Positions 18,523 to 22,980 of a stretch of 64,000 bases of DNA are shown piece by piece. Under the pieces are notes generated by a model. It searched no databases, was not told the DNA's origin, and worked only from the letters and a program-made list of their open reading frames with translations. The DNA lies in NCBI GenBank assembly GCA_021613535.1, contig CP075492.1, positions 9,982,001 through 10,046,000 on the forward strand, written 5' to 3'. Position 1 is the stretch's first letter. Every line of letters begins with the position of its first letter. Source of the DNA: Adineta vaga (lineage: Eukaryota > Animalia > Rotifera). Position numbers and translations under genes: made by a program.

Positions 18523-19372
18523 CAAAATTTACTATCAATCGAATCTTCAATCCTAACGTCTAAATTCTTCTTCTTCTTCTTATTATTATTTTTCTTGTTT
18601 TTTTTAGTAGTTCTGATGAATAATTTCTTTTATTTTGTTTGCCTTTGTTTTGTGTCATTTCGTATATTCTAAAAAAAAAGATGATGTCAGTCTGTTATCT
18701 TAATTGATTGTCAATCACGCACGTAACTGTCTCTCTTGGTATTGTATCGAATATGATGTATTTATCTATATCAATGATAGAAAAGAATAAGAATAAGAAG
18801 TCTTGTTGATTTCTCGAATATAGGAAACAAGAATAGGCGATCTTCTTTTTTTTAAGTATTACAATCGTTTATGTTATCCGCTTGTAACTAGTCCATCAAC
18901 GCTTGTCTAAGTAATTCTATCGATGAACTGTTTTTATTCGAGTCAATATTGCACATCAGTTGCTTTTCTTTCTAACCTTGACGATCTATGGGAGCCACCC
19001 ATTGACGATAAAATAATAATTGATCCTTGTTGTGCCTTGCAGACTATAGAGTTTGGTTAAAGTATTTTGCTGACGTCTCTTTTAATACATTGTTTGACAT
19101 TCCGAGTAATTAGTCTTTCTATCTCTATTTCTTGTCGTTTTGATGGACAAAAGAGATCACTGGGGTCCTCAAGCTTTATTATTAATCTTTCATTGCTGCC
19201 ATTCGTGTGTCTTACCATCCGCAAGACTAAATCTATTGTGAACCTTACAGCGACAATTATCTCTTTTCTTTTCTGCTATATAATTCTGTCGATTTTAATA
19301 ACAGAACAATGTTTTATTCTATCATTATCTTCTCCTTCTTCTTCTTCTTCTTATTTCGTTTCAGACATTTCA

Positions 19373-21743
19373 ATGTATCACGGGATGTCTAAAACTGAAG
19401 AAACTCTACGCGAATGTGGCCGATGGATATGTCATTCATTCGATATTTTAAAAGCGATTATTATTCGAGTTATTTTTGCACTTCATGCAACGATTGCAAT
19501 CATGCGAACTGTTATTACAAAAGGAGATTATTGGTATCTAATAAATATGTGTGGAGTTAATTTTCTTCTCATTGAATTGATTGTTACGATTATTAAACGA
19601 AAAGGTTTGTTGAATTTTTCACTAGAAATTTATATCGGATTATTTGATTTTGTAGGAAAAGAACCAAAATGGTAAAATGTTTGATTTCTAGATTAGCAAA
19701 TATCAAGATTCATTGTTCATATTTAGGTTTTCACCATGTTTTTTTCTTTATATTTGTACAATGATTCCTCCAATATGGTTTTTAGAAATCAATCGGATTA
19801 ATGTTAAACTTGGTGGTGGATCAATGAATCAAACTGAAGGCAAAGAATTAGAAATTCTGATTGAAAAAGGTCTTATATCAAAAGCAAATATCAATGATAA
19901 AACGGTTTGTTTCATTTTATAGACTTTTTTTCTTCTTTTTCTAATTTTCTTTCTTTGCGCACAACAATATCAAATTTCTTTTCTCTTTTTTAAACATAAA
20001 ATCTCAATCGAAATGAATTCTATAGAATTTAGTCGTTGAAAAGGTGAGAGATAACTCAAAAGAACATGAATTTTCGCATGATGCATGATTATATATCAAT
20101 ATATTTTATATTTAATATTACATAACAATAACAAAAATGAAAGAAATAATGACAAATATTGCCGTTAAATATCGACAGTGGTTTGTTGAGGTTTGAGTTC
20201 AAAAGTTACATATTGTTCAGGTCGTCGTGGTCGAGCACCCCATGCTGGATAATAGTGATGATGACGACGTAAATAAAACGCTAAGATACCACAAAGTATT
20301 GATAGAAGAAATAAAGATGGAAGAATAAAATTACGAAAAATAGTTTGAGCTTTTTTTTCACGATTACTCAAGATAACTGGAGGAGGACGAGAAGATGAAG
20401 AAGAACTAACGATGGTAGTAGTTGTTTCTATTGGTTGTTCATCAACGATACTTTGTGGTGCCCAAAACGTAATTTGCGATTCATCAATCGTTCGATTTGG
20501 AGTAAAACCAAAATAAATTGATAATGTTCGTGTAATACTATGTTTATGAAGAACAGTTCGAATTAATAAACCTGTTGTTAATATACAAACAAGAGTTATC
20601 ATAACAATAATTAAGACTGAAATAATTGACGATGATTTAAAATAAATGAATGAATCTTCATTTTCATCGTTGTCGTCATCATTTTTTCCATAGTTTTTAT
20701 CACCCAATACTTTGGATATATCTTCATCTGTAGCTTTAGCGGGTAGTACTTGATCACCATCATTTTCTCCCATTATTGTCAAGGGCACATGCGTATACAA
20801 CGTGTGCAATGTACTGATGTATAGAATAGCGTTATTCTTTCTATTCTTCGTTCTTTTTCTTTTCCCGTTCTTCGCTGGAATATGACAATATGTCGGTTTA
20901 TGTTCTTGTTCTCTAATATACGAGTTGCTTTAAGAGAAAAACTAATTCTAGTTGAGTTTTGATTAATAAACAGAATAAATTTGAAATTTATCGAACTTTT
21001 TCTGCATGATCAATATAATCAGGCATGTGCATCTTGGCATGTTCTAGAAAAGACCTTTAACTATTGACGATTGGGTTGTGGTTATTGAAGTAACATTTTT
21101 AATGATAATTATTATTGGCCGGTGGTTATTACCAAAAGGAAAAATTAGTCGTTCTGCACTTTCTCAACTGTTACTTGTTTATCTTTCATTAGCATCAGAT
21201 ATGATTGATTTATTATCGATATTTCAAGAAGATAAAGTGATTCGAAATTCCAAAATGATCTATTCAACTTTAGCTGTTTTCTCCTGGTCAACATTTCAAT
21301 TTAGTTTAAATCTTGTTGCATCACGTGGTCGAACATTTCGTTTCGATGCCGAAAGTATAAATTCAAACAATCAATTAAATCTAATCAAACAACAAAAACG
21401 TCGTCGACCACAACAACAAATTCTATCTGTATGTCACAAATTAGCAAATAGTGAATTACCCTCGATATTTCTAACTATTTTAATGCAAGATTTACCATTT
21501 CTTGTCATTCGTCTTATTGCTGTTGTACATTTTAAAGTACAATCTTATACAACAATCTTTTTTACTTGTAAAAATTTAATTATTTTATGTTTACAAGTTT
21601 ATCGTTTATGGTCAATTTGTATTGAACATATTCATCAAGAGGAACCAAATAATAATGTCGATAAATATTCCATAACAGCAGCAACAATACAACGTTTACC
21701 TCCATTACCTGAGTCAGCAACAACTCAATTTATCTTAGCATGA
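19373..21743 (+). CDS. TMEM26: TMEM26-like protein, isoform A (shared exons 19373-19604, 19656-19671, 19727-19904, +/- microexon 20026-20043; terminal exon A 21048-21743)
   Basis: KAIIIRVIFALH...KRKGKEPKWFSPCFFLYICTMIPPIWFLE and IIIGRWLLPKG.ISR..LSQLLLVY...DM, MQDLPFL.IRL, IFFTCKN are TMEM26 motifs; phase-0 acceptor at 21047. Confidence 0.82.
20165..20773 (-). CDS. Nested antisense gene: two-TM membrane protein in a TMEM26 intron
   Basis: About 200-codon uninterrupted ORF from ATG 20773 with acidic N-terminus, two hydrophobic helices, S/T/P linker and tail YVTF...TTVDI. Confidence 0.65.
   Translation of the reverse strand: MGENDGDQVLPAKATDEDISKVLGDKNYGKNDDDNDENEDSFIYFKSSSIISVLIIVMITLVCILTTGLLIRTVLHKHSITRTLSIYFGFTPNRTIDESQITFWAPQSIVDEQPIETTTTIVSSSSSSRPPPVILSNREKKAQTIFRNFILPSLFLLSILCGILAFYLRRHHHYYPAWGARPRRPEQYVTFELKPQQTTVDI
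21003..21041 (+). promoter_or_regulatory. Cluster of three RBFOX-type (T)GCATG splicing elements at the exon A acceptor
   Basis: TGCATG 21003-21008, GCATG 21023-21027 and GCATG 21037-21041, all within 45 nt of the AG at 21047; further copies at 20076, 20082, 21738 and 21748. Confidence 0.6.
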
Positions 21744-21862
21744 TATCGCATGAGCCAGATAGCTTGAAATCTATCGAACAATATTATATATATATATATA
21801 CATATATCTATACATATGATGTAAATTGCTTTTTTTATGAAGAAAATTTTTATTTAATTTAG

Positions 21863-22980
21863 ATGAAAGAATGGGGTATTGAAGATGCCATGATGGTTGA
21901 ACTATCATTTATGTTTATTATTATTCTTGGCCGATGGTTATTACCAAAAGGAAATATATCTCATAGTGCATTATCTCAGTTATTACTTGTTTATTTATCT
22001 CTTGCATCGGATATTTTGGATTTATTGACATTATTTGGTGAAAAAGAAATCTATTTAAGTAAACCGATGGTTCATATTGTGCTGGTCGTGTTTTCATTAT
22101 GTATGTTTCAATTTGCGTTGAATTTAACTGCAACACGTGGTCGATCATTTCATGCAGAATTTGATGATTCAGAATTTGAAATTCATCAATCAGCACCACT
22201 ACAACTAGCATCACGATCCTTACCAGTACATCAAAAGATTACAAATAAATTTATCCCAAGTATAGTTTCATCATCAACAGCTCGACCATTAACGACAACA
22301 TCAGCAAATCAAACACCACGTGTGAAACCACGCGCAGCATCATTTTCGATTATAGAGCCATCTGATACAATCTTTGAAAATCCAATAAATCGTGGACATT
22401 TTGAAATGCGAGCGAGTAAGAATAGTTTAGGTAAGAGACTTCTTTCAATGAATAGATCATTTCAAATTCTATTCTTCTTTTTCCATTTACTCCTACAGCT
22501 CTTAAACCATCGTTTCCTGAATCTGATTTACTTTCAAATATTCCTCATCCACCACCAATGCTGCAGCGTCTATCCATAGGTTCTTTTAATTCACTACATT
22601 CATCCTTATGGCATACATCACGTTCAAAACAAATATCAAGAAAATCGGTTGCAGAAAGTGTGAAAATCTTTGTTAAAAAACGATCTGCAAAATTTCTTCG
22701 ATCAGAAATTTGGTCTATTCTAGTAACATTATCTCTACAAGATGGTCCATTCTTCGCTATTCGTCTTGTTGCTATTATCGTTTATCATGTACGATCATTT
22801 TTAACATATTTCTTTACATTTAAAAATTTCTTAATTTTACTTTTTCAAACATATCGTATTGCTTCGATATGTTTAGAAAAAGATGAACAAGAACAAGAAT
22901 TCGAAGAAAAAATCGATACAATACGACGCATGAGTGTTGCAGCATCACAACTTGGCGTATCATTGAATAGAAAAATCTAG
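21863..22980 (+). CDS. TMEM26: TMEM26-like alternative C-terminal half B (exons 21863-22430, 22499-22980)
   Basis: Second copy of GRWLLPKG.IS.SALSQLLLVYLSLASD and LQDGPFFAIRL..FFTFKN, preceded by a phase-0 acceptor TTTAG at 21862; it has no N-terminal half of its own. Confidence 0.78.

Follow-up and report, generated by a model that had tools for sequence, protein, structure and literature searches.

The TMEM26 gene of the bdelloid rotifer Adineta vaga has one N-terminal half (the N-half) followed by two tandem duplicated C-terminal halves (blocks A and B), and this raises the question of how one front is used with two backs. Our comparison of this locus, which lies in a window of 64,000 nucleotides (the whole stretch of DNA that was analysed), with its counterparts in other bdelloids leads us to a reading in which this is probably one TMEM26 gene, the shared front of which would be spliced to either the A or the B back half. 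The parts that would be shared by both products are as follows.

19373..19604, forward strand: exon 1, encoding TM1-TM2; Pfam Tmem26 positions 2-56, 29 bits
19656..19671, forward strand: exon 2, 16 nt (G-KEPK-W), linking phase 1 to phase 2
19727..19904, forward strand: exon 3, encoding TM3 and the start of the loop; Pfam positions 63-114, 24.8 bits
20026..20043, forward strand: microexon NLVVEK, 18 nt, phase 0, between tatag and gtgaga

Exons 1 to 3 (19373-19904) together cover positions 2-114 of the Pfam family Tmem26 (PF09772), and exons 1 and 3 both score above the family cut-off of 22.2 bits. The window was searched against Pfam exon by exon, and the joined models of the N-half with A or with B that are referred to here are stored database proteins only. 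The peptide produced across the very short exon 2, KGKEPKWF, is found in three of these public models (P0121, P0072, and P0080). Translation starts at the second ATG, at 19385 (MSKTEE), which is invariant in seven of seven loci, and the ATG at 19373 is an additional in-frame codon upstream of it that is common to A. steineri. The stretch preceding the initiator is unconserved in the seven loci, which provides a control for the start of block B discussed below. Shared 5' exons with a phase-0 donor at 19905 had been described in the earlier note and were found there to within one base; the GT is at 19905-06, after ACG and within gtttgt, and is conserved in six loci. Splice donors and acceptors at the junctions in question are in phase 0 in all loci compared.

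Downstream of the long intron lie the two back halves and the elements that separate and terminate them.

21048..21743, forward strand: block A, encoding TM4-TM8 with a short loop, stop at 21741-43; Pfam positions 127-285, E 6e-48, 164 bits
21744..21862, forward strand: A-B spacer, 119 nt, with a T-rich tract and the TAG acceptor of B at its end
21863..22430, forward strand: block B exon 1, encoding TM4-TM6 and the first part of the loop; Pfam positions 129-228, E 6e-29, 102 bits
22499..22980, forward strand: block B exon 2, encoding the rest of the loop, TM7-TM8 and the C-tail, stop at 22978-80; Pfam positions 223-285, E 3e-16, 60 bits
23006..23011, forward strand: AATAAA, 26 nt after the block B stop

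The phase-0 acceptors (21047 and 21862) and separate stops (21743 and 22980) that had been read earlier from the sequence were reproduced to within one base, with the AG of A at 21046-47 and that of B at 21861-62. Block B is interrupted by a phase-1 intron at 22431-22498, its first exon thus ending in a phase-1 donor, and the same splice is made in P0121. That A and B are paralogs, as had been proposed, is borne out by 49% identity over 135 amino acids (E 8e-37) and 41% over a further 88 (E 4e-20), and the two acceptors are homologous as well, the conserved E(V/L)(T/S)F motif following them after 13 (A) or 12 (B) residues. The blocks differ in size (231 versus 349 codons for A and B, respectively), and the long S/T/R-rich loop that had been singled out as specific to B is indeed about 160 amino acids against about 45 in A, some 115 residues longer. 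An AlphaFold2 model of the N-half, microexon and B (32-row alignment; pLDDT 61.7, pTM 0.45) did not reach the quality needed for a fold search and served only for its count of 3 + 5 helices.

Because block A closes with a stop codon and lacks a donor, no single protein can contain both C-halves. The earlier claim that B has no N-half of its own is also correct, as only the 119-nt spacer separates it from A, and no N-half was found in the spacers between A and B at any locus (80-388 nt). These spacers, which end in TAG, measure 80-119 nt (Didymodactylos, 388 nt). Neither AATAAA nor ATTAAA is present in the A. vaga spacer, and the spacers of eight loci are without a canonical poly(A) signal, while such a signal is located 26-106 nt past the B stop in every locus examined. 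Since no canonical signal follows A, what is chosen in the switch seems to be one of two acceptors and not one of two independent terminal exons. We infer, rather than observe, the route by which the 3' end of the A form is made.

The arrangement is not confined to this chromosome. The order of N-half, microexon, A and B is also found on the ohnologous chromosome C6 of A. vaga and in A. steineri, two Rotaria loci, Didymodactylos and metagenomic bdelloids, giving 10 loci in total; a metagenome scan gave just three loci. The synteny check proposed in the earlier note found N-A-B preserved on C6 as well as in four or more additional bdelloid genera or lineages. The C-block was duplicated together with its acceptor before the living bdelloids diverged. 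In Brachionus calyciflorus a single C-half is followed by an unrelated gene, and a tree of A, B and monogonont sequences, in which the sole outgroup has a branch length of 10, places the duplication neither before nor after the monogonont split. The cores of both blocks are under strong purifying selection, with dN/dS values in five comparisons of 0.08-0.25 for A and 0.05-0.17 for B, next to 0.09-0.28 for the N-half. Within B, the values were 0.05-0.17 for codons 1-100 of exon 1 and 0.06-0.12 for the core of exon 2. The dN/dS check on the two blocks, also proposed earlier, hence gave a purifying range of 0.05-0.25.

The start of block B was also compared. Its first codon directly follows a pyrimidine tract and TAG in all 10 loci and is ATG in three of them, ATT, ATA or ATC in six and GTA in one. 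The eight codons after it, KEWGIEDA in A. vaga, show coding-like evolution. Over codons 1-9, the minimum numbers of substitutions at codon positions 1, 2 and 3 are 6, 0 and 12 (P = 0.0007 for zero changes at position 2), compared to 14, 14 and 16 in the 27 nt upstream; pairwise dN/dS is 0-0.36, E3 and G5 are invariant, and W4 is present in 9/10 loci. Judging by this substitution pattern, coding-type conservation starts exactly at the B acceptor, and the block has no separate start codon. A block constrained from its acceptor onward and lacking a start needs an upstream coding exon ending in phase 0, and exon 3 and the microexon are the sole candidates for this role. Translation of B from the ATG at 21863 with its own start site, the case that according to the earlier note would speak against a switch, is contradicted by a non-ATG codon in seven of the 10 loci, and we reject it because this ATG is lineage specific.

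The reading that we favor can then be put as follows. Exon 3, or the optional microexon, would be joined through its phase-0 donor to the acceptor of A (21047/48) or, with A skipped, to the acceptor of B (21862/63). The outcome would be two full-length TMEM26 proteins that have TM1-TM3 in common and differ in TM4-TM8, the cytoplasmic loop and the tail, and the long S/T/R-rich cytoplasmic loop of B is probably regulatory. The splicing switch suggested in the earlier note gains support at the sequence level from the conserved layout, selection on both blocks, the lack of a separate start in B and a public model, P0121 (A. vaga I4U23_029129, from the ohnolog, 481 amino acids), that joins the N-half and microexon to B. 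Other models represent the alternative form, with P0072 containing the N-half, microexon and A and both P0080 and P0103 containing the N-half and A, and several public annotations give B as a separate gene. A junction-spanning protein search with P0121:90-260 returned only genomic single-exon fragments and one monogonont-type open reading frame and no cDNA-derived fragment of either isoform; it is the comparison across bdelloids that suggests an N-to-B junction in RNA.

A different use of the same sequence is conceivable in bdelloids, where a 23-nt leader is trans-spliced to >50% of transcripts (PMC1925144). The N-half and A would then form the whole TMEM26, and B would be a separate downstream cistron that receives the spliced leader and is translated from its first in-frame AUG (codon 1 here and Met10 elsewhere), giving a five-helix half-protein that never occurs with the N-half. 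Besides the abundance of the leader, the short spacers (80-119 nt), in which no canonical poly(A) signal occurs, resemble an operon-type junction, annotation pipelines often call B alone, and Met10 is conserved, as an independent start would be, in 9/10 loci and in the majority of some 65 B fragments from databases. However, Met10 is lost in one Didymodactylos copy (L024) and in P0033, and in 9/10 loci it is preceded by an out-of-frame AUG in good context inside KEW. The codons ahead of Met10, with no position-2 change and the low dN/dS given above, are unlike an untranslated leader. In addition, B alone would span just positions 129-285 of the 285 in the Pfam family, and its acceptor matches in position and phase that of A, which certainly needs the N-half. 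We therefore consider it unlikely that B is only a downstream cistron.

The two modes could also be combined, with the B acceptor cis-spliced to give N + B and, whenever A is chosen, the same acceptor trans-spliced to the leader. This trans-splicing would create the 3' end of N + A and free a B-only mRNA that is read from Met10. Such a scheme would account at once for the constraint on codons 1-9, for Met10 and for the missing poly(A) signal in the spacer, and it draws on a process that is established in bdelloids (PMC1925144), but it is more complex than either single reading, and for TMEM26, a family with one domain of eight helices, no half-protein is known as a precedent. We judge it distinctly improbable; if true, three proteins would come from one promoter, with a mechanical coupling between alternative splicing and operon-type processing. 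It overlaps with the favored reading, an N + B isoform being part of both. Tandem exon duplicates often decay, and one block might be a pseudo-exon with the other alone in use, but both have open frames, splice sites and dN/dS values of 0.05-0.25, and both have been kept in the two ohnologs and in five or more bdelloid lineages, Didymodactylos among them. We find this extremely improbable and, on the grounds of selection and conservation, reject B as a pseudo-exon.

Around the microexon and in the long intron, the following features are located.

20076..20087, forward strand: pair of GCATG motifs, 33-40 nt 3' of the microexon
20165..20773, reverse strand: antisense nested gene within the long intron, open reading frame of about 202 amino acids
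21004..21041, forward strand: three GCATG motifs, at most 45 nt upstream of the block A acceptor

The microexon is kept as [DN]LV..K in five loci and is always 18 nt; of the public models, P0121 (with B) and P0072 (with A) contain it, and P0080 and P0103 do not. The GCATG pair recurs at +24 to +40 from it in five loci, two to three copies are located at -47 to -11 from the A acceptor in five loci (one copy in Didymodactylos), and the motif is also found on the A stop and just 3' of it. Across the whole window GCATG is not enriched (71 found versus 67 expected), and only its placement is special, being fixed at the microexon, the A acceptor and the A stop in five to six loci. The clusters may regulate the splice choice through a putative Rbfox-type factor, the presence of which would favor the microexon and B and the absence of which would favor A. 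Six-frame genome searches gave no match to the Pfam domain Fox-1_C, which does not show that it is absent. The product of the nested gene has an acidic N terminus and a single hydrophobic helix and matched no Pfam family. Its position is conserved in A. steineri, Rotaria and L018, with 58-67% identity; the ohnolog and L027 lack the gene. The earlier note listed neither this gene nor the coordinates of the microexon.

Should the N-to-B junction be confirmed, two proteins that share three helices and differ in five and the loop come from a single promoter, in an arrangement that has been kept through the whole of bdelloid history and on both ohnologous chromosomes. Public bdelloid annotations split the gene into two or three or give one isoform, and gene counts and orthology tables would then be wrong for TMEM26 in those annotations. 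Since bdelloids also trans-splice a leader, the locus is well suited to asking how cis- and trans-splicing compete for one acceptor. Vertebrate TMEM26, a member of the same Pfam family, spans the membrane several times, and its molecular function is unknown; in contrast to the bdelloid gene, mouse and human TMEM26 have a single C-half, with reported splice variants that only truncate or frameshift the protein (PMC3182993). The exchange of C-halves in bdelloids would provide a natural experiment on this family.

Parts of this organization have parallels in other systems. Spliced-leader operons of nematodes and tunicates likewise have a short spacer, no obvious poly(A) signal and a strong acceptor before the next frame, but in TMEM26 the nine codons after the B acceptor are constrained, the acceptor codon is mostly non-ATG, and the "cistrons" would be paralogous halves of one domain. 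Mutually exclusive tandem exons of membrane proteins, such as the segment exons of ion channels and those of Dscam, are similar to the proposed switch in that homologous exons of the same phase with homologous acceptors are used singly and are both under selection. Those are internal one-segment cassettes between constitutive exons, whereas the unit in TMEM26 is the whole 3' terminal block, and the blocks are exclusive because A has a stop and no donor, in contrast to classical cassettes. Drosophila lola and mod(mdg4) have shared 5' exons and many paralogous 3' blocks, partly trans-spliced, and resemble the arrangement proposed for TMEM26 in combining a constant N-terminal part with one of several tandemly duplicated C-terminal blocks that have their own stops. 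They exchange soluble zinc-finger or FLYWCH modules, however, while TMEM26 has two blocks that would exchange five of the eight helices of one membrane domain, and such a swap of most of the membrane core within a single domain is unusual in alternative splicing.

The window lies on contig 3 of the six-contig, 100.8-Mb genome of the bdelloid rotifer Adineta vaga, whose name the top protein matches carry, and is AT-rich (about 30% GC). The coordinates that the earlier note had given for the N-half and the two C-half blocks of TMEM26 were accurate to within one base, and a microexon and a nested antisense gene, both absent from its list, are added here.

Features of the TMEM26 locus (window coordinates, plus strand unless stated)
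19373-19604, exon 1
19656-19671, exon 2 (16 nt)
19727-19904, exon 3, with a phase-0 donor GT at 19905-06
20026-20043, microexon (18 nt, phase 0)
20165-20773, minus strand, antisense gene nested in the long TMEM26 intron
21048-21743, block A
21744-21862, spacer between A and B (119 nt)
21863-22430, block B exon 1, followed by a 68-nt phase-1 intron (22431-22498)
22499-22980, block B exon 2

In an exon-by-exon search against the 285 positions of the Pfam Tmem26 profile, exon 1 matches 2-56 and exon 3 matches 63-114, block A covers 127-285, and the two exons of block B cover 129-228 and 223-285. A and B are 49% identical in the first conserved core and 41% in the second, and the long S/T/R-rich loop reported for B is indeed there, with about 160 residues compared to about 45 at the same place in A. 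Three membrane helices are predicted for the N-half and five for each block; the predicted structure model was too poor for use apart from this helix count. In each of the two A. vaga copies, an acceptor-like ttcag lies 8-21 nt 5' of the conserved ATG at which TMEM26 starts (window 19364-19385; L013, the copy outside the window, reverse complement 1880-1891), as would fit the addition of a spliced leader at the 5' end of the gene itself.

In a six-frame, genome-wide Pfam search, the ohnologous copy on contig 6, with exons 74-79% identical to those in the window, showed the same order of N-half, A and the two exons of B. The N-half/A/B order is also found in A. steineri (L020), two Rotaria sp. 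loci (L021 and L027), Didymodactylos carnosus (L024 and L025) and several metagenomic bdelloid contigs (L014-L018). In the monogonont Brachionus calyciflorus there is one C-half, and the gene after it is unrelated. The C-half sequences fall into three groups in a tree, namely A (support 97/98), B (100/99) and the monogonont type (91/90). The order of the A/B duplication and the monogonont split depends on the root of this tree, which is unreliable; the duplication is certainly older than the divergence of the sampled bdelloids. The earlier note had called for synteny and dN/dS of both blocks in related species; the order is kept across bdelloid loci and the ohnolog, and core dN/dS is 0.05-0.25 in both blocks, which rules out decay of either.

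Pairwise dN/dS against five loci
N-half: 0.09-0.28
Block A, codons 1-100: 0.08-0.21
Block A, codons 136-195: 0.10-0.25
Block B exon 1, codons 1-100: 0.05-0.17
Block B exon 2, codons 56-130: 0.06-0.12
Loops: 0.5 to above 1

The flanks of the locus are syntenic in bdelloids (L020 and L021), with a 7tm_1 receptor gene upstream and an ABHD16-type hydrolase gene downstream. The intron within block B is missing from three metagenomic bdelloid lineages (L014, L015 and L016), and its 68 nt in the window correspond to a gap of about 860 nt in Rotaria sp. (L021 6555-7415). The A. vaga genome also holds another TMEM26 paralog, with a single C-half (L003, G000:C2:11031123-11031950), whose motifs (VYMSIASDIVDLL) look nearer the monogonont type than A or B and whose branch in the tree is very long. 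The nested antisense gene encodes about 202 amino acids, with an acidic N-terminus, one hydrophobic helix and a basic tail, and its product matched no Pfam family. A. steineri, Rotaria sp. and one metagenomic bdelloid carry it at the corresponding position (58-67% identity), and it is missing from the contig 6 copy and Rotaria L027.

Whether block B depends on the N-half was addressed by sequence comparison alone. In ten loci, a pyrimidine tract and TAG directly precede B, in an acceptor homologous to that of A in place and phase. The earlier note had named ATG 21863 as a possible start of B's own, and this is rejected: the first codon of B is ATG in only 3 of 10 loci (the window, one Rotaria and one Didymodactylos), ATT, ATA or ATC in six and GTA in one, making it a lineage-specific Ile/Met variant and not a conserved start. 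Synonymous changes are seen among codons 2-9, which nevertheless read KEWG(I/V/L)(E/D)(D/E)(A/S/T) in nearly all loci. For codons 1-9, which precede the conserved Met10 (the tenth codon of B), the minimum numbers of substitutions in the first, second and third codon positions are 6, 0 and 12 without Didymodactylos (P = 0.0007 for zero position-2 changes) and 8, 2 and 14 with it (P = 0.005). The 27 nt 5' of B give 14, 14 and 16, and codons 10-36 share the coding pattern of codons 1-9 (10, 2 and 13 variable sites). The initiator ATG at the true 5' end of the gene (MSKTEE, 19385) served as a control: it is present in 7 of 7 loci, and the preceding bases are unconserved. A coding pattern in codons 1-9 without a conserved start argues that translation must enter B from upstream, and the only phase-0 donors able to supply it are those of exon 3 and the microexon. 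No locus departs from phase 0 at exon 3, the microexon or either acceptor, so all four joins are in frame, and since A has a stop and no donor, A and B are mutually exclusive in the protein. In one metagenomic lineage (L015 and L018), the first nine B codons are duplicated in tandem and in frame (27 nt), reading IKEWGIEESM and then KQSDVEEPM.

In bdelloids, over half of the mRNAs carry a 23-nt spliced leader (PMC1925144). A leader-spliced message could yield a B-only product, since the A-B junction resembles an operon-like junction and 9 of 10 loci keep Met10. That B is solely leader-spliced is, however, hard to reconcile with the coding constraint on codons 1-9, with a well-placed out-of-frame AUG within KEW before Met10, with the loss of Met10 in two lineages and with the fact that B alone is the second half of the domain only. 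Dual use of the B acceptor, in cis for N+B and in trans whenever the donor joins A, would account for all observations, and we regard it as improbable.

Public gene models contain both combinations, with the microexon either included or skipped. P0121 (A. vaga I4U23_029129, the contig 6 copy, 481 amino acids) joins the N-half, microexon and B; P0072 (Rotaria magnacalcarata) joins the N-half, microexon and A; and P0080 and P0103 join the N-half to A, skipping the microexon. A piece of P0121 that spans the junction, used as a query, retrieved no cDNA-derived fragments. The A. steineri and Rotaria sp. annotations cut the locus into separate genes for the N-half, the antisense product, A and B, and the B models (L020, L021 and L027) begin at various internal Met codons or run into the intron (P0005 and P0009).

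Neither AATAAA nor ATTAAA was found in the A-B spacer in eight loci (80-119 nt; 388 nt in Didymodactylos), and a canonical poly(A) signal lies 26-106 nt past the B stop in every locus, so the choice looks like one between two acceptors in one transcription unit. Five bdelloid loci share the conserved microexon ([DN]LV..K). Over the window as a whole, GCATG shows no enrichment (71 observed, 67 expected), and its placement is fixed across loci: a pair 24-40 nt 3' of the microexon (window 20076-20087), two to three copies within 47 nt 5' of the A acceptor and one to three copies on the A stop or just past it. Rbfox-type factors promote inclusion when bound downstream of an exon and repress it when bound upstream. 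By this rule, an active Rbfox-type factor would favor the microexon and B, and A would be used elsewhere; a six-frame Pfam search did not find the Fox-1_C domain in this genome.

In conclusion, the comparative evidence supports the splicing switch proposed in the earlier note, in which the N-half is joined to A or, skipping A, to B, and an N+B isoform probably exists beside N+A. A search of the accessible literature found no mention of rotifer TMEM26, and for mouse and human TMEM26, truncating variants alone have been described (PMC3182993). Shared 5' exons followed by alternative, duplicated 3' blocks are an arrangement of a known kind. What is unusual here is that five of eight helices would be swapped inside one membrane domain, that the arrangement is old and that it is found in a group with spliced-leader trans-splicing.
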